From Dimorphilus gyrociliatus (taxonomy: Eukaryota > Animalia > Annelida): a stretch of DNA of 64,000 bases. This document shows, in pieces, positions 10,864 through 32,570 of this stretch. Each line of letters begins with the position of its first letter. The first letter of the stretch is position 1. The notes below the pieces were generated by a model, which worked only from the letters and a program-made list of their open reading frames with translations, ran no database searches and was not told the DNA's origin. Made by a program: the position numbers and the translations under genes. The stretch is taken from contig CAJFCJ010000025.1 in the NCBI GenBank assembly GCA_904063045.1, forward strand, positions 496,001-560,000, written 5' to 3'.

Positions 10864-13800
10864 ATGATTTTAAAGGCTCAATGGATATTCTTAATCTTCT
10901 ATTATTTACAGGTATTTTTTTATTTTAATTAAATGATAAGATAATTAGGTTGTAGGTTTTTTTATCTTATTTCTTTTATAGTTAAACCAAAATAATAATT
11001 AATTATGCTAATTTATTCTACTTTTACAGTGGAATAGTGTTGTTGATGGTGTTTTAACAGATTGTAATAATTGTACATCATCAAATTTACAAGAATGCAA
11101 AACGGTTACTGGTGGTTTTAAGTGTGTTTGTAAATCTGGGTTAGTTATTAAACTCTCCATATAGATATTAAGATATTTAATTAAATACTTCTATAGTTTT
11201 TATGGAGCCTATTGTTCGTTAAAACCATTGACTATTAGTGGCTGTGGAACGGACTCTTGTAATAACTGCGTCGATTCTGAGGTTGAAAGTGGTAAGAGAA
11301 GATATTTTCTCACTTAAATATAATATCCTACTTATCTTTACGATATTTTAAGCTTGTCCATCAACAACCTCAATTTATCAGTCCACTCCAACGACTTTGG
11401 AAATGACCACTACGGCTGTAGCGGATTCTGTTCAAGTTATTATTGATATGTTAGCAGCAAAGAAACAAGAATTGTCTCCAGCAGCCTACCAACAATTGGA
11501 AAATCAGATCTTGCAGCTTATCCTTAATTCCAGTATGATTTTATACTATATACAATAAAAGTGTAGGAAAGAAATTCAAATATAATCTTATATATCGATC
11601 CTTTTTAGATAAAAGAAGAAAGAGGAGAGCTATTAACGATTTGGAAGGAAAGTTTAGCGTTTCAATTACAAATATTGAACAAGTGATGAACACTCAAGGG
11701 TTAGTTAATGATTTAAGGGATTATTTGGTATTCTTATATATACCTTTTCAATCCTTGCAAATGTATAATTTACTAAGAAAACAACAATGAAACAGGGAAT
11801 TTGTTTATCGAGTGATACTCGATTTTTCATCAAACGATACAAGCGTGACAAAAGCAACCTTAGAAAGAGAAATAACAACCGACAGAGTTATAGCAGCTGC
11901 TAAGAAGACATTTAATAATACTGAAATATCTGCTAAGCAAAATGATTCTAGGACTCTTGCCAATAGTTATAGTCTATTTGTAAGAGGTTTCGTTCTAGAT
12001 AAGCGCGTTTTTAAACATTACGAACACGTTATAAAAGGAGCATTTTTCAACTCTCAACCATGTAAATAGTTATAAAATAAAGTATTTTATAAATAACTTT
12101 TAATTTAATCACGAAATCTTTTTTTCTACTTTTAGCTTTAAAGACTAGAGCAAACTTTAAAGTTGAAGTTTTAAGAGGAGAAGAATATTTTGGTTCTAAA
12201 GGGTTTGTATATGGAATACAAATAATAAAAACAAGAATTATTTGATGTTTACATCTATATTTAGCGAATCTATAACAAAGTTATACTACTTTGCTACTTA
12301 CGAGGAAAATGGTCAAACTGTTGAAGTATCCCCATTGGAAATAGAAAAACCCAACGACGATCACATACAAAACGAAGTAAAACAGAAACCAGAGTTAAAA
12401 GAAGAACCTTTGGAGTTTGCTGATCCATCTAAATTACGAGAGATAGATTCATTTTTTCTATTAGTAAACGGAATCGTCTACGATGTTGATGAAGCCAAAT
12501 TCGCCAATGCTATTCATATAGCATATCGAACTACTCTTACTACAGTAAATTTTAACGATATTAAAGTTATAATAAGCAGTAGGAAGACAGTAATATACGA
12601 AGGGTGAGTTTATTTTGTATAAACAACAGGCAGACGATTTTTAATGCTTTCAGGAAAGAATGTACAAAACTCATATACTTTCTTGAGAATACAAAGACTT
12701 CTGAAATTTTGTCTGCAACAATCTATCAGACAGTTATCGAATCCGATGTTAAAATCTCCTTCACAAATATATTTAATGAAAATTACGAATTAATTAAAGA
12801 TGTAAGGATAGAGAGAACAACTAAAACTCAAATTATCAGCGAACAAGAGGAAACCAGTTCAACTTTACTCAGTCTAGATAAGTCCTTTGTTTTCTTCTCC
12901 GAAATTGGTGTTGCAAGTGATTTATTACTTAAAATTCAAACATCCTTGGAAGCCGTTGTAAGAAAAAGTAAGTATGATGGTATTTTTCGTATTCCTCTCC
13001 ATCTATATTGGTTTATATTTTCGCATAGATTTCGAGCTTAATACTCTTGATGTTGACATTGTATCGACTAAGAGATTTGCTATTCCGGATAGAGATAATC
13101 TTATAACGCAAATATCATTTTTCATAAAAAATGGAACTAAAGTTTTGGACGCCCGTAGATTCGATTCTGTTAAAGCTTCTGTTGATGAAATTGCTACCAG
13201 TGTAACGCCTAACATTAACATAATTAAAATAGAGCCAAGACGCTTAGAAAAAACTGCAGTTTCCATTAAATCTTGCTTTAAGCAACTAATTAAAGGAATA
13301 GTTGTTATACAAGATAGTAAAAAATTTGAAGAAGCATTCAAGACAAGTATATTACAAGCGAATTCAGAACTCGTTAAAGATGAAACCCATATTAGGCTTG
13401 TATCTATTCAGGAAACACTATCAGAAAAGGGTGAAAAATTCTCTCAACTTTTTTTCTCTGCCGAAGAGGAACGTGTTCAAATAGACGCCAGTTTTAGAAC
13501 CAAATCAGAAGTTTCAGCTTTATCTTTTAAAAGTCATGTAACATTCAAGAGAAGGGATAAGACTAGTTACGAAGTTAGTACTGAAGTCAACCTTAAAACA
13601 AGTATCTACGAAGATTTAAGATTTTTCACATCGGAAACAAGAATAGTAGAGTCTGATTATACAAAAATTGAAGAGATCTATAAAACCGAAATAGAAAGTC
13701 AATTTACCCATTATAAATCCATTGTAGTAAATATAGTCAATCAAGAAACAGTCATTTTAAAGAGCAAGTAAGTCATACTCGTTTTTTTTTATATGCTTTA

Positions 13801-16800
13801 TCTATACTCATCTTCTTCCCCTTTCTCATTTTCTGATTATACTATTTCGTTTTTTAGGAAGAGAGTTACGAGAGTGGCGCTTTTTATACAAGATACTATC
13901 ACTAAAGAGATAATTGAATCCTATAAGATCGCCAGTATCAAATTCGAAAGTATTAAGACAAAGATTGGTTCTATTACTAGTAATATTGTAAAGAAATATT
14001 CCGTAAGCCAATTGGAGAGCGAAGAGAAGAGAGAGGAGACGCTTTTTGGTTTCTTTTTATCTACAAGCGTATCTAAAAATACCAGTTTAGAAGAAACAAT
14101 AGCAACATCAATAAAGAATGACGTAACTCTAGATATTAAAAAAGCGAATGTAACTGTTAAAATCATATCAATAAATGAAAGGATTAACTCGAAAAGTGAG
14201 CAAATGGTTACTCATGTCCAATACGAAGTTATGATAAATACGAGAAAAATATCTAAAAAGACAAGTTTACAAGTCTCAACTACAGAAATAACAAAAGAAA
14301 TATCAAAATTAACAACATCAACTGGAATAAGCTATTCAGTCATTAAAGTAGACGAAAAATTCGTGTTTAAGATGGAAGAAACGCATAGTTTCATTGTTAA
14401 AAATGTTATAAGAAAAGAGATTTTCCAACAGCTCCAACAAAGTTTAGTAAAAACTGTTCTAAAGAAAGTACAAAATGTACAAACATCTGACATCAGCGTA
14501 AAAATAATCAATAGATTAGAAGTATTTTCAACAGAGATTTCTCAGAAAATTACAAGAGTTGACTTTTCAATTTCAATTAAAAATCAACTTATCAGCATAA
14601 ATGAAATAACCAAAGTTAGTTCAACAGAGATAATTCAAGATTTATCTGTCGAATTATCAAAGAAAATATCAATTGTTCAAAATATTAATATTGAGGAAAC
14701 TGTTTCCGTTTCTAAAACTTTTGCTATAACTTTCAAAGAAAAGATTTCTAAGACTGAATTTTCAAAGATTAACGAAGTTATTAAAGAAAGTTTAGAAGCT
14801 GCTAGTATTACTGATGTTTCATCTAGTGTTGTAACAGTTGAAGAAGTTTTCCAGTTGGAAACGTACGTATTCCATCCGATATCTTTAGTAATCCTTTAAT
14901 CCAATATTTTTAAAACAAATAGCAAAACAGTTTTGCATTCCGTAAGAGTTATTGCTAAATCGAAGACGGAAGTGTTGAATGCTAAAGTTGAAACACTGGG
15001 CGATTTTGTCAGTGTTAAAAAGAGGATCGAAGAGAAGAATATCTTGACAATAAACAGTAAGAAAGTATCGGTAAGAATACGACGATCCTATTGAAGATTT
15101 TATACTGATATTAATTAATCCTCTCTTTTTACTTTAGATTGTTGCAATTAGTCTAGAAACAGTCGTACGAAAGTCTGAAACTCATAGGTTAACTTTAACG
15201 TCTGAATTCTCAAGATTAGATATAACAAAGGTTCAAAAAACCATCCTTAGCTTAATACAGGAAACTGATAAAAGTATACTACCATCTTTATTAATATTAA
15301 GAGAAATTTGTATAACTAATTATGATTTTTCTTAAAAAAAGGTATAACTTCAGTTACTATTGTTGGGATAACAAAGAGCTTTACCCTTGAAAAGTATGTA
15401 TAATAATGAATATTCATATACAGTATATCGTAAATGTATATAATCTACATATCTGTTATTTATCCTTTATTTCAAGAATATCTCGCGAATTTTCTAACAT
15501 ATTCTTAAAAGTTGTAAATGATGTTCAAAAGACTATCGTAACTGATTTCCAACAAATCAATATTGTAAAATTAAGTCAAAAACTTCTACAAGAAACAACA
15601 AGAATAAAATTGGAATTTATATCTGAAAGTAATATTCAATCAACGACTGTAAGTTTTCTTTAATAATAACTAACTTATTAACTAAATATTTTCTTTATCT
15701 GTTTCTACATAATCTTCTTCTTCTTCATTTATTAAAAACAACATAACTATCAATTTTCTTGCAGATTGTTGAAAAATCTCAAATGTTTAGCCTAACGTTG
15801 AAGAAAGCAATAATTTCTACGGATATTTCTAAAATAGAGAGTGCTTTTAAGGCGGAATACGAAAAAAGTTTGTCACTCTTTTTTTAATCTTTTGTATATT
15901 TCCTTTTATTGTTCTCTTGTAATTTAAGATTTTTACCTGAGTTCTTACATTCTCTTTTTATATATTTATTTATAGCTTTATCAAAGACAAACCTAAACGT
16001 CAAAATTGTTAAACAAATTGAAAAGATAACCGAGAGTGGGTTAGTTGATTTGTTAATTATATTTATCTATTATTCTATATTGTAAAATATCTCAGAGAAA
16101 CAATATGGGAAATACTTCATGTAGTTAGTGAGGAGAGTGCTGTAACTGGAGAAATAGTTATCATTGATAAAAAAGTTACCAAAGCAATATCGATAACAAA
16201 TATTAAGAAAATATTAAGCTCGATAATTAGATCGGATTCTACGAAGACTTATGAATCATTAGTTGAAACATCTGTTTCAAAAGTAGCACTGAGCGTCGCA
16301 ATTAAAGAAACATTTAAAACTATAATCGATAAGAGAATCGATATTACAAATATCGAAACCAGGACAAAATTTGAGCAAGTTTTGTTAAAATCCTTTAAAG
16401 AAACGGTATCAATAGGTATTTATATCTCATTTTTATTCTATTTATAGTTTTCTCTTCTTTATCCTCTTCTTTTTTTTCTTGTTAATCTTCTTCTCTCAAT
16501 TAAACAAATTTCTTTCCAAAAAAAAGACACAAAAAAGAGAGAACTGAAAAGAAAGCCAACCATTTGCCATATTGAAAAAAACCGTCTTTATTAGGGTTAA
16601 ATCTCTTTAAGATGGCTTCGTACATTTTTTTTCCTTTTTTTATGTTTAAATATTCATTTATGTTAATTTGAAAGGAAAAAATTATGATATTGATTAAGCC
16701 TATCGCCTATCAGAGATAATAAAGTTTTGTTCTCTCTTTTTTTAATCATATCCTGTATGATCCTTTATACGAGATTCTCTCCTTGTGTTACCTGTCATTC

Positions 16801-19800
16801 ATACATTCATATATGTCTATTCGTGTTTTGTGCTTATGCACGTGATGGGTGTTTATGTAACGCTATCAGTATTTTATATTTCAATACTTGGTTTCTCTGG
16901 TTTTGCACAATGCTCTTCGAATTACTTTTTATCACAAATTGAAAAAGACCTTCTTCCTTTCAAATATCATCTGATGTCTGCAAAAAAATTCTGCAAAATG
17001 ATCACATTTCGAAGCTATCTTATCTATAAATTATATAAAAAAAAAATCGCTATTATCTTCTCTCCACCTGGTTTGTATTGCAAGCTTTTAAGCTATTTTA
17101 TCATACTATATTGGTGTGTATAAGAAATTTTTAAATGTTAAATCGCTTGTCCTATTTTTAATTAAATTACTATTCCCTTTAGAAGAATACAAAAACATCA
17201 CAGTATCCATTATGGGAGTAGAAACTGGTTTTACAGAAATAGGGTAATTTACAATTTTCCCTTGATATATTAAATAATTGAAATGAAAAGTTTGCTAATT
17301 TTTTCTATTTTGCTTACTCTACTAAAAGTAAAGAGATACAAATTATCATCTATCGAGTAGTTTCAACTCAAACTACTAAACTTATCCTAAAATCTATTGA
17401 CGTAACCAAAATATCAACGGAAACTTTAATAAAGAATTTACAAATTGAGAATATTGTTACAGCAAAAGTTTGTATTATTAAGTTTATGCTCTAGATTTAA
17501 AAATAATATTTACTATTGATTATAGAAAGAGAAGATTTCTATTCAAAGCTTTGAAGATTTATCTATAATTAGAAAATCAGAGACTTTAAGCGTCTTTGTT
17601 AAAAAAGCATTTTCCAAATCTGATATTGAAATATTTCAAAAATCCATTAGTAAAACTTGGGAGAAAATTAATATTTTTACAATTGTTAAGATTATTTCTA
17701 CCTGGAGTTATGTAAGCGTCACCGGAGAAACGCTTACAGAAGTGATTTATAGTACTCATAATTTGTCAACCAATTCAACATCTCTAAGTGTAATTTCCGC
17801 TCAAACAATGACGTCGATTAATATCGAAACACTAGAGACTGTAATAAAGACGGAAAAAACAAGATTACAGTACGAGTTTATCAGTAAAGAGATACTCGAG
17901 AAAACTGAAACCTACCTAGAAAGTAATATCTTCGAATTTACACTCTCAACAGCCTTGAAAGAGGAAGACATATTGACATTCGAGGAAACTGTTGGAATAA
18001 CTCTACAAGAAAAACTAGAAGGTTGTAGATATTCTCATTTTAACCTTTCATTATTTATAGGAAACTTGCAAATTTCTTCCATAGTTAAAGAGGAATTGGT
18101 TGCAAAATTTATTAGAAGCGTCGAAAAGACTTCTATAACAACAACTAATCAATATTCTCTTGGGTTTGTAGTTAATAACTCTATATGCAAATTATACGGA
18201 ACAAATTAGGTCTAAAAGTGGCGTTTTCCGTAGGCTATCCGTATTTGTGCTTCAAGTTAGCCTTCAGACAAAAACTGGTATTGTTATAGATTCTCGAGTT
18301 GTTCGAAATTTGCTAAATGAAGAAGTAAAAGAAGCTATAAATCTAAGTGAAACTGGAACAAATGTTACTTACAGTGAAAGATTAGTTGAAATTAAAGAAA
18401 AGACGAAATTAATATCAAGAAACCATCTCTTCGGTATAACTTTCCAACAAAAAGTGTCCGATACTCAAACCGAAAGAACCAAACTCGAGCAAGTTTTCAA
18501 AGAAACCTTATCAAGACAAAATACAGGTTTGTACCATTCTTTTTCTAAAAGAATGTGATTTCAAATTATCTTGCCTTTAATCATATAAATTTTCTATAGA
18601 ATATACGGAGATAAGCGTAAAATTTGCCTATGTCGAAGAAGTATTCATTTCGTTTGCAAGATCCGTTTTTATCGTTCATTTTACTGTTGAAACTAAATCC
18701 GAAATACTTAGAGTATACGACCTTAAGGAGATTTCAATAACCATTGTTAAACAGGTAAAAGGAACATAAAGATTTCGTTAAGAGTATAATACTCTTATTA
18801 TGATTCTTTATCATTCTATTTATTGTTTTCTTTTTACAAAATATATATTAGATAATTAAAGAGAAGAAGATTACATCTATTAAAGAGGAAGAATACTCAA
18901 TTGTTGATATCAGTAAGGAGAAGATTATACGCAGAGTGGAAACATTCTCCTTAACGTTACGTAATCAATTTTCTATTGCTGACAAACAGAAGATAGTTGA
19001 GATCCTTAAAAAAACTACACGAGCAAGTTAGTAACATAGATTTATAGTATGATGAATTATCTTATTGTTCATTTTCTCTTTTAACTTAGCTTCCATTGAA
19101 CTAATCAGTATTGAAGAAAAAATTACTATTACGGGGTTATTATATCATTAATATAACTATACTAATTTAGTCATTCCATCAATAACTTGTGACTATTCTC
19201 TATAGATTAACGGTTACCAGTGTTTTATTTATACAAAAATCTCAAAATGGATTAATAATTAATCCAAATTATGTTGTTAAAACTTCCATTGAAGAATTTA
19301 AGAAGGAACTAGTAAAAACAACTTTTACTTCCGGCTTGATTTATACAGTTTTTGAGGAGACAACTAAAACGTTTTCGGAGAAGGAGACGTTTTCATTTGC
19401 TCTAAAAATTGGAGTTAGAGAGGTGGATTACACTCTAATTGAGAATAAAATTAGTACTTTCATTAAAACTGTTATTAGTGGTTAGTTCATTAATATTCAT
19501 ATAATAACTTAATTCGATATCGATATATTCATAAATAGTTACAACTTCTATTCAAGTAAAGATACTACAATGCGTTGAATCGGTAACGGAAACTGGGTAA
19601 ACATTTAAAAAGTATATAAAAAGTACTGTTAATAAAAAATTTCAATAACCTTTCATAGAGAAGTTGTCTACAAAACTGATTACGTTGTCATGACATCTGG
19701 CATAACAATCGATTCAAGAACAATTAGAGAATTTAAAACAACTGAAATACAAACTTTCTTACAAGTGAACATTTACGAGACGAAGGAAACATATTGGGAA

Positions 19801-22800
19801 AAATTTGTCTCAATTCAGAAGACAAGCATAATTAAACGAATGAATTTGCAAACTTTAACAGTTTCAAGTCAATTAACTCAAGTAACCATAAAGAAAATAA
19901 CTGATATCCTACTTTTACAATATCAAAAAGTATTCAATTTCATAAGCGTTACTTTCATTAAGCTAGAATCTTGTTTCATTGAAAATGGGTATGCCATAAT
20001 CTTCGTATAAATGATAGTAGTATTCTTAATAATTCTCTTCTTTTCCTTTCAGCGAGGAGGCATTTATAATCGTTTATAAAGTTGAAAATAATTCAACGAT
20101 TATTAGGAAGATCGATAACATTCAAGTTACATTTGAGAAGATAAAGGTACAGATTGAAATGGAAGATATAAAAACAATCAAGAATACGTCATTAACTCTT
20201 ATCGACGAAACCAAAATGAAAATTACAAGAAGATTAGAAACGAGTTATATTAAGATAAAGGAAAAAGTATCAAGAGAAGATTATTCAAAATTTGAATTAA
20301 TAATAAAAAATTCATTAAAGATAACTGGTAATAAATTAGAAAAGTTAATTTATTCATTCATTAATTAAATATTTTTGTAATAGAATCTACAACCGTAGTT
20401 GTTAAAGTTCTCAGAACTGAAGAGAGGATAACTATAACTGGGTAATTATTAAAGTTGTAAATATTCAGTAATTAATTCAATACTAATATTCATTCATTCA
20501 TTTTCTATTCAAATAGCGAAACCGTAATTTTGTTGATCTATTCCGTGAAAAGAAAGAGTTTATTAGTACACTCTCAACTGATATCTATTGAACAGACTAG
20601 TCTTATTCAAAAGAGAATTAGCGAAACTGTATTCATTTCTAAAAGAATCTATACAGTCTCTCAAGTAAAACTTGAAGAAAGTATAAATATTAAAGAGCTC
20701 TTTAGTTTAACATGCAAAATGTTCATTAAACATGAACATAGATTAATCATTGAGGAGAATATTGCCAAGGAATACAAAGAAGAATATAAATTGGATGTTT
20801 CAGTTAAAATTCTTGTGAAGATAGTAAAGATTATTGAAGAATTTACTGAAACAGGGTTTGTTATTTTTATAACTTTTATACTCTTTTATCTCATCTTTAT
20901 TAAATGTTTTCCTCCTTATCCTTTTTAGGGAAATTATCTACAAAACCTTATACAACATTGTTATCGGTAATAAGAGAATTAATTCGAGATTAATTAAAAA
21001 TGTTAGCGTTACGAGAATTAAGAAGATTTTTGAGCTATCTACTCAAACTAGTCTCTACTCGTCATTCGTCGTTGATATTACAAAGACTACCAAGATTTTT
21101 AGAAGGAGTGAATTACATCAATTTTCGTCAATTCAATCGATTGAAGATAAAACTGCTATTACTAGTTTAATTAAGGAAAGTTTAAAGATTTTAAATTATC
21201 TAGACGTTCAAATAAAGATAATCAAGTTTGAAGAGAATATCTTTGAAGGGAGGAGCGTTTTTACTTGCTACTATTCAGTCGTTCGGAAGAATGTCTATAT
21301 AAGAAATATAGATATTAGACGTATCACTAAAGAGACTTTAACACAAGTTTCGATTAACTTGAATATACTTAGTGTTAAAAAGGAAAAGATTACTTTTGTA
21401 CAAACTGAGAAGATCATAAGAAGAATAGAGACCTTATCGATTTCCATCAGAAATACAGTTAGTATAGCCGACTTTGAAAAAATACAAAGAGTTATTAAAA
21501 AGAGTTTAGAAGAGAGAAATGCTATAAATGTTAATATAAAAATCATTGGTATCGAAGAATACATCACAGAAACTAGGTAAGTAACGCCATCTCGTTTTCT
21601 TTTGAGAATTTTTCAAAATAATAGGCGTCTCTTCTTTTCTTTTAGCGAAACCGTGACAAAGTTAATTTATACGGCAACTACGCTTACATCTACTACGAGG
21701 ATAAACTTGCAAAGTCTTGTTGAATTTTCATCGTCAATCTTTGAAAAGTATCTTAAACTTGAACTGTTTTTGAACAATAGAATTTATCAATTGGAAAAAT
21801 CAAGTATAAAACTTATAAGAATTGATAAAACTTTCTCATTTACATTGAAGGAAAGTATAAAACTTGAAGATTATGTAAAGATTGAAACAAAATTGGCAAT
21901 AGAATATTCAAAAATCTTAAAACTACAAGTTAAAGTAAAGATCTTAAGACAAATTGAAGAATTTAGCGAAAATGGCGTAGTTTTTAAAAGAATTATATTT
22001 AAAATAGAAAGTTTAGATAAAAAGTTGATTGATAAACGAAAAACTGTTGAAATATCAAATGAAATACTTCAAAAATCAATCTTGAATATTAAAATTGCTG
22101 GTTCAATAACGAAAACATATTCAGAGACTTTAATTACAAATATTAAAACCTCTATTAGAACGGAAAATACTCATAATTTCTTAATAGATAAAACAGTAAG
22201 TTTATCTATATCTTATTCAATTTTATTAATGTAATTTCAATAATTTCCCTAGGTTTCTTTTGAAAGTGAAATAATAAAGAAACAATGGGAGAGTGTTATT
22301 CTTTCTAGTTGGAAGAAAGTTCATTCCGGTTCGTTGTTATTCTATATACTAACTATCAAAAAAATTTTTACAGTCTCAAAGAAAAGAACACAAGAAGAGA
22401 ATTTTACTCATTTAATCACCTTATCCCTTTTGTCCGTTTCTTCATTGTCGCTTTGTTATATACTGTATTTATTAGTATCTCTATATATATCAGCTTCCAA
22501 ATATTGTTACTTATTGTGTTTGTTGTTGAAAAGGAAATACGGAGAGAAACTTAGCCTATAGCTCTAACTTATTACCTATTGAATATGTTTATTATTTAAT
22601 TTCGTTGAATGTACATTTTCTTTTATTTAGATACAACGGATATAGAATTAAAGATATTGGGAACTGAAATAATCTATAAACAAGGGTAAACAATAAATAA
22701 CATACTATTTATAGTTTTAAGACAAAACGTTAAACTAATTAATTAATTAATTATCTTAATATTTTTTTTAGAAAAGAGTTTACTCAAATTATTTATAAAG

Positions 22801-25800
22801 TTTTTAATAAGAAAACTCAAACTGTTTTACGAGAGATCGATGTTAAGAAAATTGACTCTAAAGTGATACAACAAAATATTGACGATGTCAAGCTGACAAC
22901 TATTAATAACGAAAAAATAACTGTAATTATTAATGCATATATATTTGTATATATACTAGTAATTATAGCTAATTAACTAATGTTATTATTAGGTGTTTGC
23001 CTCATCCGAACTTGATATCAGGGAAAAGACTACTTTCAAATTAACTTTGAAAACTCAAATACAAGAATCAGATAAACAAAAATTCGTTCAAGCAATAAAA
23101 GAAGCTGTTATCAGCAGTAATAAATTAGGTATATATTTATTTAGACTATTTAATTAACTATTTTAAATAACTAATTTTTGTTAATTAATCAAATATTTCA
23201 GTTTTATCTGAAAATACTACGTCTGCTATCTTTGATATATCTAAGGAAGAAATTACAAAATCAGGGTAATATATATAATCTACGTTATGAATATTCATGA
23301 AATGAATTACTAATTTTTTTTTTACAGAAAAATTGTTGCAACTGTTTCAATAACGGTAAAAAGAGATTCAAAAATATTCTCTTCTCAGGAAGCGGCTTTT
23401 AATATTTCTACAGTTGAAGAACTTTTATCAAATATAACAGTAACTGGTAAGGAAAAACGCATACAAAACTTATTAAATTCTCATAAAAATCCTCTAGTTA
23501 ATGAATATTTTTAATTTTTAATTAATAAGGTACCGACGAAAAGTTTAGCGACGTTTTATTAAGTGCCAAAGTAGCTATTGAACACCAAAATATAATAAAT
23601 AAAAAAGAGAATATTGAAATGGACAAACTACTTTCACTAACTGTAGACAAAACTCTTAAGATAAACGAAGAAAACAAATTAGCCGAAATTGTTAAGAAAC
23701 TTATTGTTAAAGAGAATACTAGTAAGTTAACTGGGAACTATGAATAAATTATGTAATTTAAGTATTAACACTATGCTCTTGCTTTATATTATTAGATATT
23801 GCAGAAGCAAATTTAACTGTTGAGGTTGTCAGACAAGAAAAAGTTATTGATAAAGCAACTAAGGAGACTAAGGTCAAAGTTAAATTGGCAATAAGAGTTA
23901 ATGGGAAAATAAAGGATGCTAGATTACTAAAGATATCCAAAGAAAAGATACAAGAAGAAATCAATAAGGAAAATTTGAATATTAACATTAAATCTATTGA
24001 CAAAGAGATAAGACTGGAAAAATGTATGAAGTTATTAATAAAAAATGTACCACTCGCAAACGAAGATGTTGATAAAGCAATTAAAACTCTACAAGATAGT
24101 CTTAGAGAGTCTGACGCAAAATATAAAGATGGTATCGTCACACTCTGCACAACTCGTCAAATAATAAATGAAAAATCGTAAGTTCAATGCTATTTCTCTC
24201 TCCTACCTTTCATTCTATCAATTAGTGTACGATATAATTAATAATCCTTTACTTTTATAGGGAAACATTAACGGAAATACTTTACGAAGTTTCCATAAAT
24301 AATAAAACTATTGTGCAATCTGTTGATAAAAAAACAATTATTAAGAATTTCAAAGAGAAGAAAACAATTAAGAAAGAAGAATTTAAATTGGTTATCCAAA
24401 ATGAAAAGACTGAGATTATCGATTTTGAAAGTACATTCAAACTTTATTCATTAAACATCTTTTCGAGGGCTAGTTATACTCAAATCATAGCTTCTATCAA
24501 TCAAGTATGGAAGACAAAACTTCAATCTGGTAAGATATTTATATATATATATATATTAATAATTAGTATTTCTATTAAACAAATTAATGTTATATTATTT
24601 ATTATTAGTTATGACGACAGACGTTGATTTTGATATCAAAATTACATCGTTTAATGAGGTATTTGAAAGGAAAGTGTAAGTATTATTTATTATTATTAGT
24701 AATATTATATATTAATGTAATGTTAATGAATTATTCATTATTAAGGAGTGGACCATTTAAAATTATCTACGAATATACATATACTTTGAGTAAAAAGACA
24801 ACGAAAGAGTTAATTTCTGCTCTAAGACTTGAAAAATTGACATCTAATGAGTTGGATGAAATATTTACATCCATCGATATATCATTCAAATTTACCGGAA
24901 ACGTTGAGAATCTTGTTTCAAAGATGAACCTATTCAAGTTAACTGTTAAACAATACGTTCTTGAAAGTCAATATACAATTCTACAAAATAAACTCGAAGA
25001 ATTTTGGTCCGAAGATTCAAGTTGTAAGTTACAAAATAATCAAAAAACTAATGAAACATTCTACTCGATAGTTAATTAATTGATTAATTAGTAATTTCTT
25101 TTTTAATTAATTTATAGTTAATAGTAAAGTGGCAACATTAAGAATCGTCCAACAGCAATACTTCTTAACTTCTGAAAGGGAAACTGTTAGCGTTCTGTTT
25201 ATACTAGCCACAGATAATTCAAACGCTATTATAAAATCTAAAGATTTCCCGAATTTCAATATTCAAGCTTTAACTATTAAATTTGAATCGTTAACTATAA
25301 GATCATCGAAAGGAACTAAATATCTTCTTATGGAAACTGACCAATCAAAATTAATTGAAAGGACAAAAGTCTATAAATTCTTACTAAAGAAATCAATTAA
25401 AATTGAATTTGTATCTTCATTAACAACTGAAATAAGAAAAGTATTTGTACAAATGAAGAAAGGTAAATATTTTCCATACTCTTTAATATATCAGTAATAA
25501 TTTTATTTTATTATTACAGGTATTGTTAGAGAAGAAGATATAAAAATTGAATTGCTGCAACAAGAGGAATACATTTCTGTCAGCGACAAGTAAGAAAGAA
25601 CTCATTCTTTATAAGAACTCATTATAATTAATTATATTTCGGTTAATTCTTTCTTTTGTTTTCTTTTTTAAGAACTACCGCTCTTGCTTCCAATTTCCTC
25701 GTACTTATAGCAGACAGCGTCCTAGATTCGAGACTTGATCTTATTACAGACTCAGATTTGGAAGATATCCTAACATCCATATCGGATTATAAAGATTCAT

Positions 25801-28800
25801 TAGTGAGAAAGATTGAAGAAGGAAACTATATACGTTTCGATAGTTTATTCACTATTCTTACTGAAGTTAGAGTAGAACAAACAACCGAAATTACGAATGA
25901 AATCAAAAAACATTGGCAAACCAACTTACAAAGTAAACATTTCTTTACTTGCATCTTTAACTAATTAATTATCCAAATAGAATATTCATGACATATTTTT
26001 AATAATTTGTATTTTCAGCCTATACAGTTGATAAACTGGAAATAATAACGCAAGAGGAGGTAATACTAGAAAAGAGGTATACAAACTATAAATCTATACA
26101 TACTGCATATAGCGTATATACAATATTTAATATATTGGGTATATTAACTTGGTATTTTTTGTATTTAGTTCTACTTTCGCTTTTGGCGTCTTTTATCTAG
26201 TAAAAACTGATAAAGAAACTCTAGACGCCAATAAAATTGACGTTAAATACACGAAATTACAAGAAATGATTAGCAAAGCTGAAATAATTTATCAAGGAAC
26301 AACTTACAAATATAAAATAGTTGAGATGGAATTATTCACAAGAACAACAGTGACAAAGACTATTCTTATTGAACGAGAAGAGATTGATAAGGTTGTAACC
26401 CTCTTATCTAATCTTTATCTTCTTCATCTTACTTTCCCCCGAAATAGGATAGCTACGAAGTAATTGAAAAATCTTTGGAAGAATCCTACAAAATATCTAA
26501 CAACTTTTTCGTAGATAAATCCATAGAGATTATCGTTAAAGATGAATATATTAGTCTACAAGGGTAAGACTGGATTATGATTTAAATACTATATAGTATG
26601 GACACAAATATCAATTATCATTATCTTCTTTTCCTTTTAGAATTTCGGTTATAAAACTCTTTTATAAAGTTTTACAAGAGAATAAAGTATCAATCCTAGC
26701 CGAATCATTTAATGAAATATCACATTCCGATATACAACAACAACTAAAGGAGTTTAAAGTCTTTACGTCAAATGACAAACTATTTAGATATAAGAAAAAG
26801 TTCTCGTTTGTACTTGAAAGATTCGTATTGAAAGATAACGTTGGTACCATTCAATTGAATTTGAATAAAGCTTGGGAGGCTAGATTACAAACGAATACTA
26901 TCTATTTCGTCAAACAAGAAGAAGTTCTTAACGATAACGGAAAGATATTTTATCAATCGTCCTATTTCGTTGAAAATACAGCAACAAATACAGTGCTAGA
27001 TTCGATTGTTTGGGGTGAATTGGAAGAAAATATCATAGAAGAAGCATTAGACGTTCAAGTTCAGAATTTACAAGATAAATATAAAGATTTTCTAGTAATT
27101 ACTTCAAATGCTACTGAATTAATAAGATGGAAAGACGCTTTTTCAATTATGACTATTGTAAAAATATCTAAACAATACCATGACGATATTAAGAGAGCTT
27201 TAACAAATATGTGGAGGAATATAAGGAAGTTATCAGTGGATATTCATATTTTCCCCAATAGCGAAAAATACGTTCAAGAATCTGGGAATATTATTCATAA
27301 ACTCTTTTATAAAGTTAAAGAGAGTTCAAAATTATTGAAAGCCAGTAACCTTGGTAATTTTGAAGATGGTGAAAATCAGGAAAATTTCAAAAATGTCATA
27401 GTTACAAATAATCAGCAATTATCGTCATTGGTTAGTTAAATTTATTTATATATTTATTAGAATAATTAATTAATTACTCTCCTTCTATCCTATTCATTCC
27501 CTTAGCTGTTCAAGTCAACCAGTGGAGAGTTGTATAGAATAAAGAGTACTTTTAATTTCCAATTATCGCGATCTATATTAAAAACTGATGAAGTTAACAT
27601 TAACACTCAGTTGCAAACTATATGGAAAGCTTCTAATTCCGGTAAATAATTTACTATTATTAGTAATAATCTCATTATTTTCTTTGTGAATTAATTAAAC
27701 AGAAGTTTCAACTGTAACGATTTTGGCCAGAGAAGAATTTATCATCAAATCTAATCTGGAATCTCTATATAAAATATATTATCTCGTTAAAACTGATAAT
27801 AAAATTTTAGACGCCGTTTTTAACAGTGATATAGAATCTCAAAAGGTAATAGAAGAGTAAAATATATATGATCTGTAAAAGTTCTCAACCAATTTATATA
27901 CTCTAATTGCAGATTAGAGACGCTCTTGATGCAGTAACAATTGGTCAAAGCTCTAATAAGTACTCGGAATTTTTCCAAACATATTTGGCATCTGAATTAA
28001 TACCTTTCGACGATTTAATGTCGTTAGCTCTTCGTCAAACTGTCATTAAGACTGATTATATTATATTGGAAGAGAAGTTGAAAGAAGCTTGGGTAAAGAA
28101 GACATCACTTTCGGATGTTGAAATAAAAATTGTAGGTCAAGAACGCTATACATTAGACAAGTAAGAATTGATGAATTTGTTTCTATTTTTTAATTATTAT
28201 TCATTGATTATTCCTCTCTCTCTCTCTCTCTCTCTCCATGAATAGATTATTTGTCTCCAAAATTCTATATACTTTTACCCGAAACCAAGTTATCTATACA
28301 CCAATCGATTTAGAGATGTTAACAAAAGTTGAATTATCAGCTATCGAGGAAATTGATAGTGCCAACGGAGAAAAGTATTCTATTATCGATTCGTCAGAGA
28401 ATTTAATTAGATTCAAGAAAGCCCAATTCATTTACCTTGATAATTATATTAAATTAAATCAAATGGATAAAATCATAGATATTATCTCAAACGTAATTCA
28501 AGATAATACAATCGAAATTCAGTTGGGTCCTTCGGAAGAATTTATCCATCCTACGTAAATATAAACAACAAATATAATCGTTTTATCAATGCTATACTTT
28601 TTATTATACACATTACAGAAAGAAAGTTATTATTCGATTGTCCTACTTTTCATTTATAAGTAACCTTGTTATTGATGGGCGTTTAAGACCTGCTCTATCT
28701 ACTCAAAGACTACAAACCGAACTCGATTCTCTTAAATTAAAGATTGTTGTTGATACAACAAATTATATTAACGAAGTACAAACAGCTACTTTAATGGTTA

Positions 28801-31351
28801 TTGGAATACCTAGTAGGACGGATAATAAAATCATTGCAGGTTTGCAAGCAGTTGCGTCCGGTCTGCTACCAGGATCAACTGCCGAAATTATAAATTATCA
28901 ACCATATATTAGTCAAACTGGATTAGAATTGACTGGAATTTTTTATAAAATTACCTTAAATGGTGAAATACAAAATCCTAAATTGTTGAAAATTCCTGAA
29001 ATATCTTCAGACGACGTCTATAAGGGAAAAGATGTTCTTAAACTGAATAAATTATATAAGTTATCCCTTACGGGTCTAATTTTAAATGGTGATACTCAAC
29101 AAATGATAAAGCAAGTAACATTTGTAGGATCTTGGACTGAATATTGTAAGCATTTATTATAGAAATGGAGCATATATTATTTAAATCTATTCTTCTTTCG
29201 CTTTTAGTACAAAAGAATAGACTGGATTTACAAATATCATTCTACAAAGCCGATGTTAATTTTGGTCTTTTTGGGTAAAACCAGTTTATTAATACTATTA
29301 TTAGAGATAAACTACTATAATCATAACGTCTTTCTTTTCCAGAGAAATCGTTACGAATGTATTATATTCAGTTGAATCGAATGGTTTTATTTATCATCCC
29401 GCTATTCAAGATCCTGTTCCAAAATCTACCAGTTTCCGTCAGGCAATAAAATCAATTGTACCAGTAAGTAATTTTTATATCATTTAATATCAAATATTAA
29501 TATATACGATACTTTTGTTACTTTCATTAGGAAACGAGCTTGTTCGATGAGAGTCGAACGCTAATAAGACGTGATAGAACATTTAGCCTTACTTTTGAAA
29601 GGACTTTAACAAGTGACGATATCGAAAAGATTACTAATGAATTACAAGCGAAATGGACGACAATTGAAGCCTTGGATGAATCGCCAAAGATTATTGGAAT
29701 TTCGGACAGAACTGATGAAACTATGGGGTAAATATACTATTGTTACATCTATAGAGAGAATCCTAATAACGCATGCTACTCGCTCTTTGTTTTTAGCAAA
29801 TCTATTGTTCAAGTTTATTACATTGTTAAGAAGAATGGTATTAACATTGAAGTTACTGATGTAGACGGTCCAACCGATTTACCATCGTTTCCCGCGTTCG
29901 ACCAACCAACTGTACCAGTTGAATCGTTATATATTTCGGGTAGAGTTAACGATTCATCTACTAATAATATTCAAACTGTATTGGAAACAACATGGCGAAG
30001 AGCGACAAATGTTAACGATTTGAAAGTTAAATTAACTTCTGTAAATTCAAAATTTACCTCTGTGGAATGGAAAAAAGTAACGCTAGTTAAATATGCGGTT
30101 GAATCTGAACAAAAAGGAACGCCTGGTAGAGATTCAATAGAAGGAGGATTAGGTACTTTTGGTTTAAGATTATGTAATTGCGTTGCCCAAAAGGAGAGAA
30201 AATTGGTTTTAAAAGCTGAGAGAGCAGACGTGGTGGAAAGTGTCGTATCAGAATCTATACAGGCTGCTTGGGAAAATAAGAATTCAGAGGTTAACGGTAC
30301 TTTCGAAGCCAAAATTAAGATAGACCAGAGTAGGAAAAAAAGAGCTGCTACTGGTGGCAGTGGCTTGACAGTTGATAATGGGTAAATATTGCAAAACTTG
30401 ATGATTTATATTGAATAGAATAGACAATATATTTATTGTTTTTCTTTTTCCTTTCCATTTTAGCACTGCAATAACTCCGATATCTGATCAAGTCACTTTA
30501 GATAGTATGCCTCCTCATCCTCTACTTATTAAAGAGCCTACACCTCAAGAGATTGACGATGAGCTAAAGAAACGATCCAATAATGTTGAAGTTTGCCACG
30601 GAGTTTGTAAACCAAAGATATGCAGATTTATGAACGTTAAGAAAACGGAATCTAATAATATTGAAGATGTTAAATTAGCTATTCAAGAAGCTTACGTTGA
30701 GGCTAATCCTGGAATGGAAAAATCAGATTTTGAGGTAGAAATAACACAAGTTCAAGAATTGCTGGATAGCAACGGGTTTGTAGATTAATAACATATTATG
30801 CAATAATTATATCTTCTATTATTTTTTATCGTAGATTAAGCTATTCTAAAGTTAATTATTGCGTATCGACAAAAGATGGATCAATTCCGCAAGAACCAAC
30901 AGACGAGCAGTTAAATAGGGCTCTTAAAAAATATGGCTTTGAACTGTTCGATGCAGAAGTTACAACCGAGAAACCTGGTGATGTAGTTGAAGAGGGAGAC
31001 GTAAATATACATTTATTTACCTTGTATATACAATATATATATATATATATATGTATTTATTATATTACATATAGCTAAAATGGATTATCACGGCTGGAGT
31101 ACTTTGCGGTTTATTCGCCTTAATCTTCTTAATTTTGGCTATTGTCAAAATTTGGATGAGATCGAAGTAAGTTTAAGGAAAAGGTATTTAAAAATCATAT
31201 TAATAATTTTCCTTTATAAAGACGTCTCCAAAGACAAAAATCAAGAGAACAAGATCGGGAATATTTACACGATGAAGAATTCTATCCAAAATCTAGAAAT
31301 GGTACTTTCGCAACTTATAATACTCTTCATTCAACAGCTAACTCCTCTTAA
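10864..31351 (+). CDS. Giant multi-exon type I transmembrane protein: signal peptide, EGF-like Cys domain, dozens of divergent SEA/ferredoxin-like modules of about 110-130 aa, TM helix, short cytoplasmic tail
   Basis: Exon 1 10864-10911 plus exon 2 11030-11139 give MILKAQWIFLIFYYLQWNSVVDG followed by an EGF (CKTVTGGFKCVCKSGFYGAYC). Every stretch I traced (11.0-13.1 kb, 14.9-17.3 kb, 30.8-31.35 kb) splices in frame. The ORF-track fragments from 11.8 to 30.8 kb share one repeat pattern. TM exon 31075-31166 encodes WIITAGVLCGLFALIFLILAIV; the tail ends ...STANSS* at 31349-31351. Not every junction was verified. Confidence 0.8.
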
Positions 31352-31569: not shown

Positions 31570-32502
31570 TTAGAGGCTGTCGTTTGCTTTAAGTAAAAGC
31601 ATCAATTTTCTCTGTAGATTCTCCTCTCTTCTCTGTTTTTCCTTTAGCAGTTCTTTTTCTATTAGTTGGTTTAATTCTCTGGAGAGTAAATCGTTTTCAG
31701 TTCGCTTGACTTGGTCCTCATTTCTATTGAAAAGGGAACTGTATTCGTTTTTCAGAGTATCTTTCTTGTCTTGTAATAATTGGCTATCTAGTCCCAAAGA
31801 TCGTAATTTGCTTAATTGCTTATCTTCCGTAAGCTTTTTCTTTGCTAGTTCTGCCTTACGTTCCTGTTTCAATTGACTTTTTAGATCGTTTAGGAGGTTA
31901 TCAAACTCCCTTAGGTCGTTTTGTTTTTTTGCTATTGCAGATTCTTTCTTTTCCTCTTTCACATCTTCGTTTTTCTTCTCTTGTTTCAAAGCGGATTCTT
32001 TATTTACAGTTTCACTCTTTTTAGCTACTGAATTCTTACTGTCTTCATTTTCGTGTAAAAATTTCTCTATTAAATTTCTAAGTTCGGAATCATCTTTAGA
32101 AATAGTCTTCTTCTCCTCTTGTTTTTCTTCCTCTTTCTTTTCAACTGGACTATTTTCCTCTTTTTTCACAGCTGTTTCGGCTTCCTTCTTTTCTGCAGTT
32201 TGACTTTCCGTCTTTTTCTCTGAATCTTCCTTTTTAACTTCCTCTTTACTGGTTAGTTCAGTTTTCTTTGCTGTTTTTTCACTTTCACTGTTGTCGGCGA
32301 GATTTAATTTTGCGATCAAACCTTCAATTTCTCTTAATACATTACTATCGTCATTACGTTTCAAAGTTGGTAGAAGATCTTCTTTATCATCGTAACGTTT
32401 CATTAATTCCAGCAAGTTTTCATCGCTTTCGGTTAAAGGTAGCGATTGAGTTTGATAGACAATGCAAAATGCAAGTAAAATCTTTAAAATCTTCGAAGAC
32501 AT
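31570..32502 (-). CDS. Single-exon secreted, highly charged granin/prohormone-like protein (310 aa)
   Basis: The ATG at 32502 (not the TTG at 32520 used by the track) starts a signal peptide MSSKILKILLAFCIVYQTQS. The mature region is Cys-free and E/K/D/L-rich, with several KR and many KK dibasic sites and repeated amphipathic motifs (LREIEGL, LRNLIEKF, LREFDNLL, LSRELNQL). Confidence 0.8.
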   Translation of the reverse strand: MSSKILKILLAFCIVYQTQSLPLTESDENLLELMKRYDDKEDLLPTLKRNDDSNVLREIEGLIAKLNLADNSESEKTAKKTELTSKEEVKKEDSEKKTESQTAEKKEAETAVKKEENSPVEKKEEEKQEEKKTISKDDSELRNLIEKFLHENEDSKNSVAKKSETVNKESALKQEKKNEDVKEEKKESAIAKKQNDLREFDNLLNDLKSQLKQERKAELAKKKLTEDKQLSKLRSLGLDSQLLQDKKDTLKNEYSSLFNRNEDQVKRTENDLLSRELNQLIEKELLKEKQRREENLQRKLMLLLKANDSL

Positions 32503-32570
32503 TTCGTTTCGATATCTCAAATTTAAGTGAGAGTATTAGTTGAATAGTGATATAAGAATAGAACTAGTTG

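Follow-up and report, generated by a model that had tools for sequence, protein, structure and literature searches.

The region 10864-31351 (+ strand) of the window, that is, of the whole 64,000-nucleotide stretch of Dimorphilus gyrociliatus DNA that was analysed, is one intact, single-copy gene of 64 exons for a type I membrane protein of ~4,980 aa. It is likely that this giant gene encodes a chain of SEA/MAD-type beads and that its product, as far as function can be deduced, works at the cell surface as an extensible tether or spacer that a furin-type protease splits near the membrane. The protein starts with a signal peptide and a single EGF-like domain; a short Thr/Ser stretch leads into ~36-41 modules, and the protein ends with a transmembrane helix and a tail of 43 aa (Table 1).

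The gene model was built by chaining exons through dynamic programming, with the two ends set by hand, and it runs from the ATG at 10864 to the TAA at 31349-31351. All 63 introns are GT-AG (median 70 bp, range 50-767). The first-pass annotation had read the apparently unrelated ORF fragments of this region as a single spliced frame of 4,500-5,000 aa, and the model bears this out, with zero in-frame stops across the 64 exons (15 kb of coding sequence) and an encoded length of 5,022 aa in its first version or 4,980 aa when exon 34 ends at 22328. The latter end is probably correct, as the frame is preserved and 42 anomalous residues drop out. The alignment of exon 34 to L011, a contig of a close relative, covers its first 30 residues only, where that contig stops. 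Exons 1-34 are present in L011 in unchanged order, with 35-85% amino acid identity, and BLASTN against it covered 88% of the exon bases and 45% of the intron bases. In the worm's own genome, every whole-genome match of the module profile (28/28) fell within this gene.

Since the chaining script always returns some chain, and exon 34 was at first mis-modelled, the single frame might be an artefact, and the region might instead contain more than one gene or an array of gene fragments in decay. This is, nevertheless, very improbable: 15 kb of coding sequence are free of stops, there is a single signal peptide and a single transmembrane helix at opposite ends, the relative keeps exons 1-34 in order and phase, 18-aa exons included, and each mollusc orthologue is annotated as one protein of 3,600 aa, all of them mutually collinear over their full length. 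Frame continuity and the orthologues point to one mRNA from the whole region. The composition is also as first described, rich in Ile, Lys, Thr, Glu, Ser and Val (11.9, 10.5, 9.5, 9.4, 9.4 and 7.9%, respectively) and poor in Cys (0.5%) and Pro (1.0%). A thrombospondin gene lies upstream in the same window.

Table 1. Features of the gene (positions in the window).
Feature	Position	Strand	Basis
Exon 1: start codon and hydrophobic leader of 16 aa, signal-peptide-like, then GT donor	10864..10911	+	direct reading
Exons 2-3 (11030-11139, 11197-11291): EGF-like domain	11030..11291	+	Cys motif
Exon 4: Thr/Ser-rich stretch (11361-11414), then helix-like segment	11353..11532	+	
Exons 5-59: main array of ~114-aa modules	11609..29727	+	profile matches, alignment
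Polybasic K-R-R-K-R-R, furin type, at start of exon 5, directly before first module	11611..11628	+	putative cleavage site
Exon 11: 334 aa, intronless, nearly three modules; basis of three-module AlphaFold model	13858..14862	+	
One complete 128-aa module	14351..14734	+	AlphaFold
Only long intron, 767 bp	16416..17182	+	exon chaining
Exon 34, uncertain 3' end	22253..22454	+	alternative donor GTTCGT at 22328
Exon 60: module end, one whole module, then beta1-alpha1-beta2 of penultimate module	29797..30381	+	
R-K-K-R furin-type site, directly after strand beta2 of penultimate module	30332..30343	+	profile alignments
Exons 61-62: remainder of split module, then last, membrane-adjacent module	30464..31000	+	
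Exon 63: transmembrane helix, 25 residues (31081-31155)	31075..31166	+	direct reading
Exon 64: 43-aa cytoplasmic tail with Y-x-x-D-E-E-F (31262-31282), then TAA	31222..31351	+	

An equivalent of the exon 1 leader (M-K-K-I-L-W-I-L-S-I-I-I-Y-A-Q) precedes exon 2 in L011. In the EGF-like domain, an intron splits the motif C-x-C-x-x-G-F-Y-G-x-x-C and two further Cys pairs follow; exon 2 alone gave a weak EGF_CA match in Pfam (E 0.037), and all the cysteines of the domain are kept in L011. Exon 4, which is 80% identical to L011, occupies the position of a ~200-aa mucin stretch in the mollusc orthologues, and the polybasic site that follows has the counterpart K-K-R-R-K-R in the relative. Towards the C-terminus there are a C-N-C motif in exon 60 (30173-30181) and a C-x-x-x-C motif in exons 61-62 (30594-30608). 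After the transmembrane helix come a basic stop-transfer and the tail, in which the Pfam scan recognised no domain. The leader at one end and the helix, stop-transfer and tail at the other agree with the type I topology proposed before. The protein has only 27 N-glycosylation sequons and its Thr/Ser stretch is very short, which speaks against a coat of mucin type with heavy glycosylation in D. gyrociliatus.

The repeated pattern noticed in the first-pass annotation was recovered by a module profile of 87 columns, built from 12 exons, which matched 42 exon pieces at >=15 bits. On the other hand, the same profile gave no match at all in 20 shuffles of each exon and in the reversed exons, where the best decoy reached 12.3 bits. 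With another profile, built largely from foreign sequences, 34 modules were counted by helix alpha1, or 36-41 with the weak ones, close to the 35-45 that had been guessed. Modules are ~114 aa long and share 8-24% pairwise identity, and Tandem Repeats Finder reported two short AT-rich arrays only, both intronic; thus the earlier remark that there is no obvious tandem identity at the DNA level was right. A pair of exons recurs per module, one of ~90-110 aa and one of 18 aa which holds strand beta2, and the hairpins show E-x-x-x-E-x-G followed by a hydrophobic strand.

The complete 128-aa module was modelled by AlphaFold with confidence (pLDDT 90.4, pTM 0.82) as beta1, alpha1, a long beta2-beta3 hairpin, a short strand, alpha2 and a closing strand. 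The three-module model of exon 11 had a mean pLDDT of 78.8 and a pTM of 0.71, with pLDDT >90 over residues 170-290, in its best-covered module. Foldseek placed PCDH15 MAD12 at the top (probability 1.0, TM 0.58), with an E value of 0.05 that is not significant, and VIA-align gave Z 8.8-9.1 for the same domain (rmsd 3.4-3.7 Å over 99-109 residues; for the complete module Z 8.8 and rmsd 3.7 Å over 109 residues) and a further match to it at Z 8.6, where Z 8-9 is the upper edge of the scores of unrelated models in this structure library. Lower scores were obtained for Nup54 (7.4), CELSR1 and CDH23 MAD28 (6.9 each), the SEA domains of dystroglycan and MUC16 (5.1-5.2, with 5.0 as the lowest MUC16 value) and of TMPRSS (4.3), IA-2 (4.1) and the Notch2 HD domain (3.7); the solved SEA domains 1ivz, 7sa9, 8gkl and 2e7v scored 4.3-5.1. 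These models support the ferredoxin-like fold that had been anticipated. The SEA-like assignment stands in part: the structural neighbours are of SEA/MAD type, but the closest are cadherin MAD domains and canonical SEA domains score only around 5. The suggested KIAA1549/DUF3827-type domain was not upheld by any Pfam scan, neither that of 20 exon translations at E<=1, which gave no SEA (PF01390), cadherin or KIAA1549/DUF3827 match, nor that of the orthologues P0001, P0002, P0003, P0007, P0010 and P0016, which gave no SEA and no KIAA1549/DUF3827. According to the models, the modules would have a small SEA/MAD-type fold, and the solved structures closest to it come from extracellular domains next to the membrane.

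It is a real possibility, although not the one we expect, that the modules are an independent ferredoxin-like invention and that the likeness to SEA and MAD domains is structural convergence only. The ferredoxin-like fold is very common, unrelated models can reach Z values of 8-9, the intracellular protein Nup54 is on a par with some MAD domains in score, and the module sequences are similar neither to solved SEA/MAD chains in the PDB nor to Pfam SEA. However, seven of the top eight structural matches (all but Nup54) and several lower ones are extracellular juxtamembrane members of the fold, from PCDH15, CDH23, CELSR1, dystroglycan, MUC16, IA-2 and Notch HD. The worm modules share with them the extracellular context next to a transmembrane helix and a processing site in the same hairpin, as described below. 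The cadherin MAD domains differ in that each occurs once after cadherin repeats, with 4-12% sequence identity to the worm module, whereas the worm has ~38 modules in tandem and no cadherin repeat in any exon.

Searched against 1.84 billion representative proteins, the module profile found 52 matches, and the named ones were all from molluscs or Owenia. The orthologues are proteins of 3,400-3,600 aa from bivalves, gastropods and the annelid Owenia, and include the hypothetical proteins KAK3591160.1 of Potamilus streckersoni, KAK6195844.1 of Patella caerulea and CAH1774350.1 of Owenia fusiformis (20, 23 and 6 module stretches by profile, respectively). Exon 60 matched residues 3197-3395 of orthologue P0002 (E 9e-14), and exon 61 matched P0002, P0007, P0001 and P0016 collinearly (E 1e-8 to 1e-5, with P0007 at 1e-8). 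The whole C-terminal block is collinear, from the Cys motif through the last module and a transmembrane helix at the equivalent place to an acidic-aromatic tail, and the tails of Patella and Potamilus, proteins which align over their full length, are similar (Y-D-x-E-x-F ... F-x-N-x-x-Y). Hence, sequence comparison makes the D. gyrociliatus gene an orthologue of these giant proteins. All of them are uncharacterised and neither the exon nor the orthologue scans gave a Pfam match to a named family, which fits the first impression of an unnamed family rather than a plain orthologue of a characterised one; no literature on the family was found, and no Pfam model exists for it. The orthologues, the heads of those in molluscs (see below) and the conserved furin-type sites were absent from the first-pass annotation.

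The mollusc orthologues begin with an MNNL-DSL head, followed by the Ser/Thr/Pro mucin stretch and ~25 modules. Pfam found MNNL and DSL in the Patella protein and DSL in those of Potamilus and Owenia, and two of these three carry the automatic UniRef name 'Delta-like protein'. The Owenia gene model contains 19 EGF and three DSL domains as well as VWA, and may be a fusion of neighbouring genes. These proteins are shorter than the worm's, with fewer modules and DSL-containing heads, and in molluscs with the mucin stretch. The worm's copy has neither the MNNL-DSL head nor the long mucin stretch: tblastn with the mollusc heads found nothing in the window or in L011, and none of the 13 DSL matches in the D. 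gyrociliatus genome lies on the contig of the gene.

MNNL and DSL form the Notch-binding head of Delta, Serrate and Jagged, and the worm protein retains one EGF-like domain at the equivalent end. However, what comes after the head in molluscs is not a series of EGF repeats but a mucin stretch and modules. The protein could be primarily a signalling molecule, a Notch-ligand relative or a force-sensing receptor with a proteolytic switch next to the membrane, in which the chain is a lever. Besides the heads, the conserved cytoplasmic motif and the fact that SEA-like juxtamembrane domains can be force-dependent switches favour this idea. We regard it as quite unlikely, given that DSL and MNNL are missing from the window, from L011 and from the worm's genomic contig, that the tail has just 43 aa and no recognised domain, and that Notch binding by the mollusc heads is a supposition from their sequence.

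The extensible tether could also be placed in a broader history, which we put forward tentatively, at somewhat less than even chances. The worm gene would belong to a family of half-megadalton surface proteins that is ancient, undescribed and specific to lophotrochozoans, and its modules to a new sequence family of the SEA/MAD fold. Its ancestor would have carried the MNNL-DSL head on an extensible stalk of >100 nm with a furin-split juxtamembrane module. Such a protein would have been a Notch-ligand-like tether, long-range or force-buffered, and only its stalk would remain in the miniaturised worm.

Regarding processing, profile alignments place the R-K-K-R site of the penultimate module in its beta2-beta3 hairpin, and the proteins of Potamilus, Patella and Dreissena have S-R-x-R-R at the corresponding position, with no furin-type site there in the Owenia protein. 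This hairpin is where SEA domains cleave themselves. Mucin SEA domains are self-cleaved and the SEA-like domain of Notch is cut by furin, and in both cases the two chains stay associated. Thus the worm protein resembles MUC1-type SEA and the Notch and dystroglycan HD domains in having a processing site within a juxtamembrane ferredoxin-like domain. It differs from self-cleaving SEA in its dibasic R-K-K-R, presumed to be a furin-type cut site, and no G/S-V-V-V autoproteolysis motif was found in the beta2-beta3 turns of the aligned modules. Because R-K-K-R lies in a juxtamembrane-type fold, the protein is predicted to consist of two chains that the split domain keeps joined: a furin-type protease would cut the hairpin, and the outer chain would then be held to the membrane stub solely through the split domain, by analogy with mucin SEA and Notch. 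Such a domain could allow release or signalling under force, and SEA domains can serve as force-sensitive proteolytic switches (bioRxiv 10.1101/2024.07.10.602225).

Alternatively, furin could free the ~4,800-aa ectodomain permanently as a secreted component of matrix, cuticle or mucus, with the membrane anchor used for delivery only. Conserved R-x-[KR]-R sites near both ends are compatible with this, as is the presence of an extracellular-matrix gene, the thrombospondin, in the window. We consider it unlikely, since the putative cut site is within a folded module and not in a linker, and when SEA and Notch HD domains are cut at a comparable position their two chains remain together. Moreover, the transmembrane helix and tail motif are kept from the worm to molluscs, which suggests that the anchored form matters.

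For the anchored protein, the ectodomain is expected to form a very long bead chain off the cell surface, ~100-200 nm when folded. As the N and C ends of the fold are adjacent, each bead should unzip at low force, paying out roughly 40 nm, so that the chain could extend and serve the apical surface coat as a tether, spacer or shock absorber. The termini of PCDH15 MAD12 are likewise adjacent, and a low mechanical strength is predicted for this domain (bioRxiv 10.1101/460097). The long extracellular chain of modules that had been proposed is therefore retained, but not the stiff rod, since neighbouring chain ends make an array of weak, unzippable beads likelier.

MUC16 (CA125), a membrane mucin of vertebrates whose SEA domains stand in tandem by the dozen, is a close known parallel in design: it too is a giant type I protein with a short cytoplasmic tail, and its ectodomain is a long tandem row of ferredoxin-like modules of ~110-150 aa. 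However, there is no sequence similarity between the modules, those of the worm abut with almost no glycosylated linker and are devoid of the conserved SEA disulphide, and an 18-aa Thr/Ser stretch stands where MUC16 has a huge mucin domain. Furthermore, MUC16 is vertebrate, whereas the worm family is limited to lophotrochozoans. To our knowledge, giant surface proteins of tandem SEA type are known essentially from MUC16 only. The same design in an unrelated, single-copy sequence family of worms and molluscs, conserved across more than one phylum, indicates that it appears to have arisen repeatedly or to be older than thought.

We know of no discussion of an architecture that joins such a stalk to Delta's Notch-binding head, as in molluscs. 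In addition, the ~38 divergent copies of one small fold offer a natural series for sequence-structure tolerance and for the mechanics of tandem ferredoxin-like domains, and the furin site, if it cleanly replaces SEA autoproteolysis at the same hairpin, would connect mucin, Notch and dystroglycan-type processing.

Finally, the only long intron of the gene gave no match in an Rfam scan, and its counterpart in L011 is likewise long (~970 bp) and scarcely alignable.

Between 10.8 and 31.4 kb, the plus strand of this AT-rich window (GC ~28%) carries dozens of short open frames, which the first-pass annotation had read as a single giant gene. A model was built by chaining GT-AG-bounded open segments by codon-usage score, with both ends set from the DNA reading, and the outer positions proposed earlier, 10864 and 31351, turned out to be the exact ends of its start and stop codons. 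The coding sequence has 64 exons and the 63 GT-AG introns range from 50 to 767 bp (median 70 bp). The concatenated coding sequence, used for length and stop count only, contains no in-frame stops; all searches were run per exon. The first model gives a protein of 5,022 aa, but 22328 (GTTCGT donor) is the more plausible end of exon 34, which keeps the frame and yields 4,980 aa. Rfam and tRNA scans returned no matches. Feature coordinates are collected in the table.

Features of the giant gene and its neighbours (window positions)
Feature	Position	Strand	Description
Upstream gene	8709-10014	+	EGF_CA, EGF and thrombospondin C-terminal (TSP_C) exons
Giant-gene coding sequence	10864-31351	+	ATG at 10864, TAA at 31349-31351
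Leader			exon 1; 16 hydrophobic residues
EGF-like domain			exons 2-3; intron interrupts the C-x-C-x-x-G-F-Y-G-x-x-C motif
Thr/Ser stretch			start of exon 4; 18 residues
Polybasic K-R-R-K-R-R	11611-11628	+	start of exon 5, directly after the EGF-like head; kept in the relative's contig
Module modelled singly	14351-14734		
Long intron	16416-17182	+	767 bp
T/C-rich 24-bp tandem	16448-16494		within the long intron
C-N-C	30173-30181	+	
R-K-K-R	30332-30343		furin-type site
C-x-x-x-C	30594-30608	+	
Transmembrane helix			exon 63; 25 residues, clean
Cytoplasmic end			exon 64; basic stop-transfer and 43-residue tail
Single-exon ORF	31570-32520	-	316 aa, signal-peptide-like start

With a leader in the first exon and a helix and tail in the last two, the giant protein is therefore of type I, as had been proposed. 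If the polybasic site behind the EGF-like domain is cut, the small head would part from the stalk unless it is otherwise held.

The stalk consists of repeated modules of about 114 aa. A profile seeded from one module at strict thresholds recovered its neighbour alone; because the modules are too divergent, the search was reseeded from exon-register alignments. Twelve mid-sized exons fit one alignment register, and the iterated profile built from them matched 42 exon pieces at 15 bits or more, against none in 1,260 shuffled exons (top score 12.3 bits) and none in reversed exons, which bears out the claim of divergent repeats. A second, single-module profile made mostly of foreign sequences found 53 pieces, with about one expected by chance. 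Coverage of helix alpha1 by this second profile gives 34 modules, and 36-41 once weaker N- and C-terminal copies read by eye are included. Pairwise identity to a reference module is only 8-24%. In the central modules an exon pair recurs, one exon of ~90-110 aa and one of 18 aa with strand beta2; the introns interrupt the module at the beta2-beta3 turn and in the stretch from alpha1 to beta2. The coding exons have no tandem repeat at the DNA level, and the composition is as first described, with Ile, Lys, Thr, Glu, Ser and Val leading and little Cys (0.5%) or Pro (1.0%). The protein carries 27 N-glycosylation sequons, and so few argue against a classic mucin coat in the worm.

Concerning the fold, Pfam gave no matches for 20 exon translations, and the suggestion of a KIAA1549/DUF3827-type domain was rejected for want of any Pfam match. 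Exon 11, whose 334 aa hold almost three modules, was modelled by AlphaFold from 33 aligned rows with pLDDT 78.8 overall and above 90 across the best-covered module. For a single module (56 rows) AlphaFold reached pLDDT 90.4 and pTM 0.82; in this model beta1 and alpha1 lead into a long beta2-beta3 hairpin, after which come a short strand, helix alpha2 and the closing strand. In an exhaustive structural comparison, whose Z scores of 7-8 are often reached by unrelated models, PCDH15 MAD12 (membrane-adjacent domain) scored Z 8.0-9.1 over 99-109 residues, the Nup54 ferredoxin-like domain 7.4, CELSR1 and CDH23 MAD28 6.7-7.3, the dystroglycan and MUC16 SEA domains 5.0-5.2, and the SEA or SEA-like domains of TMPRSS, IA-2 and Notch2 HD 3.7-4.4. 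Foldseek also placed MAD12 on top for the single module (probability 1.0, TM 0.58), with non-significant E-values; the three-module model matched generic tandem ferredoxin-like proteins alone (ACT, RRM; E ~1e-3). Searching the ESM Atlas features with exon 11 yielded no usable match, and the module profile found chance-level matches alone among PDB sequences, with no solved SEA or MAD chain. A ferredoxin-like fold of SEA/MAD type is thus well supported by the predicted models. The resemblance to SEA and MAD domains is one of structure, with no match in sequence, and any homology to them is putative.

In the worm itself the modules appear confined to this gene, as all 28 matches of a six-frame profile search of the 77.9-Mb genome fall inside it. 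In a close relative, an 18.8-kb contig (L011, run SRR23372228) carries exons 1-34 in the same order, with leader, cysteines and first polybasic site all retained. Amino-acid identity to L011 is ~60%, a level at which synonymous sites are probably saturated. Several further assembly fragments show 50-70% identity to single exons. The gene's sole long intron has its counterpart at 12279-13247 of L011 (~970 bp); the two share almost no sequence, and no Rfam match was found.

Among 1.84 billion representative proteins, the module profile matched 52 at E <= 1e-3. Those named come from bivalves (Potamilus streckersoni, Dreissena polymorpha, Tegillarca granosa, Mya arenaria), gastropods (Patella caerulea, Gigantopelta aegis) and an annelid (Owenia fusiformis). 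One HSP spans the whole of the Potamilus (KAK3591160.1, 3,590 aa) and Patella (KAK6195844.1, 3,634 aa) proteins, whose modules have a period of ~110 aa. Exons 56, 60, 61 and 62 of the worm gene are collinear with the orthologue C-termini, where an S-R-x-R-R site and a C-x-C-x-P-[KR]-like motif are shared, as are the last module, the membrane-spanning helix and a tail of Y-D-x-E-x-F type. An unexpected extra is the Notch-ligand head of the mollusc orthologues: in Potamilus and Patella, DSL (with MNNL in Patella), EGF and a ~200-aa Ser/Thr/Pro stretch precede the modules. These heads found no match in the window or in L011, and a DSL search of the worm genome gave none on the giant-gene contig. 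The Owenia protein (P0007, CAH1774350.1) has 19 EGF domains, three DSL domains and one VWA domain ahead of about six modules; it may be a fusion model of neighbouring genes, or the family head may be very variable.

The last two modules of the worm protein begin with the C-N-C and C-x-x-x-C motifs, which are among its few cysteines beyond the EGF-like head; similar C-x-C motifs are found in all orthologues. By analogy with protocadherin-15, in which MAD12 promotes dimerisation, these membrane-near cysteines could form an inter-chain disulphide.

A furin-type site was placed with a trimmed single-module profile, the multi-module HMM from A3 being too long. In the profile alignment, R-K-K-R sits in the beta2-beta3 hairpin of the penultimate module, directly after beta2, and S-R-x-R-R occupies the same position in three molluscs, while Owenia is without the site. 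It is in this hairpin that SEA domains cleave themselves, and in a cut SEA domain of MUC1 type the shared sheet keeps the two chains joined until force separates them. In the fold that MAD12 represents, the N and C ends are adjacent, so that pulling at low force is predicted to unzip beta4 from beta1, and a domain of ~120 residues, once unfolded, adds more than 40 nm (bioRxiv 10.1101/460097). Moreover, SEA domains act as force-sensitive switches like the Notch NRR in cell culture (bioRxiv 10.1101/2024.07.10.602225). Taken together, the hairpin site, the MAD12 mechanics and the SEA switches suggest that the giant protein is probably an extensible tether or spacer of the apical surface coat. Furin would split it near the membrane, in the penultimate module, and the outer chain could be released, or could signal, under load.

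In design the nearest known protein is MUC16, which likewise combines SEA-fold modules in tandem with a single transmembrane helix and a short tail; the modules themselves are nearest in structure to the cadherin MAD domains. The giant protein belongs to neither group by sequence or architecture. Full-text literature on lophotrochozoan DSL or SEA proteins yielded Notch-ligand surveys and no description of this family; one survey reported expansions of DSL proteins and excluded those with "unexpected architectures" (PMC8166818). For these reasons the sequence family is rated as novel, and the fold and architecture type as already known.

A 3,092-bp contig (L015, JGI sample 3300036281) encodes a further family member, P0003 (765 aa, seven modules), followed by a 254-aa ORF. 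Its coding sequence has no introns, unlike the worm gene, and P0003 is more acidic than the worm protein; the contig may be transcript-derived, from an unknown animal.

Regarding the neighbouring genes, the upstream thrombospondin-like exons were considered as part of the giant gene and rejected: TSP_C exons are the last of the upstream gene, its frame is shut after them near 10014, and ~850 bp separate this end from the ATG. Downstream, the minus-strand ORF converges on the giant gene, with stop codons ~220 bp apart. The ORF has no Pfam match, and its body is extremely Lys/Glu-rich and probably coiled or disordered.
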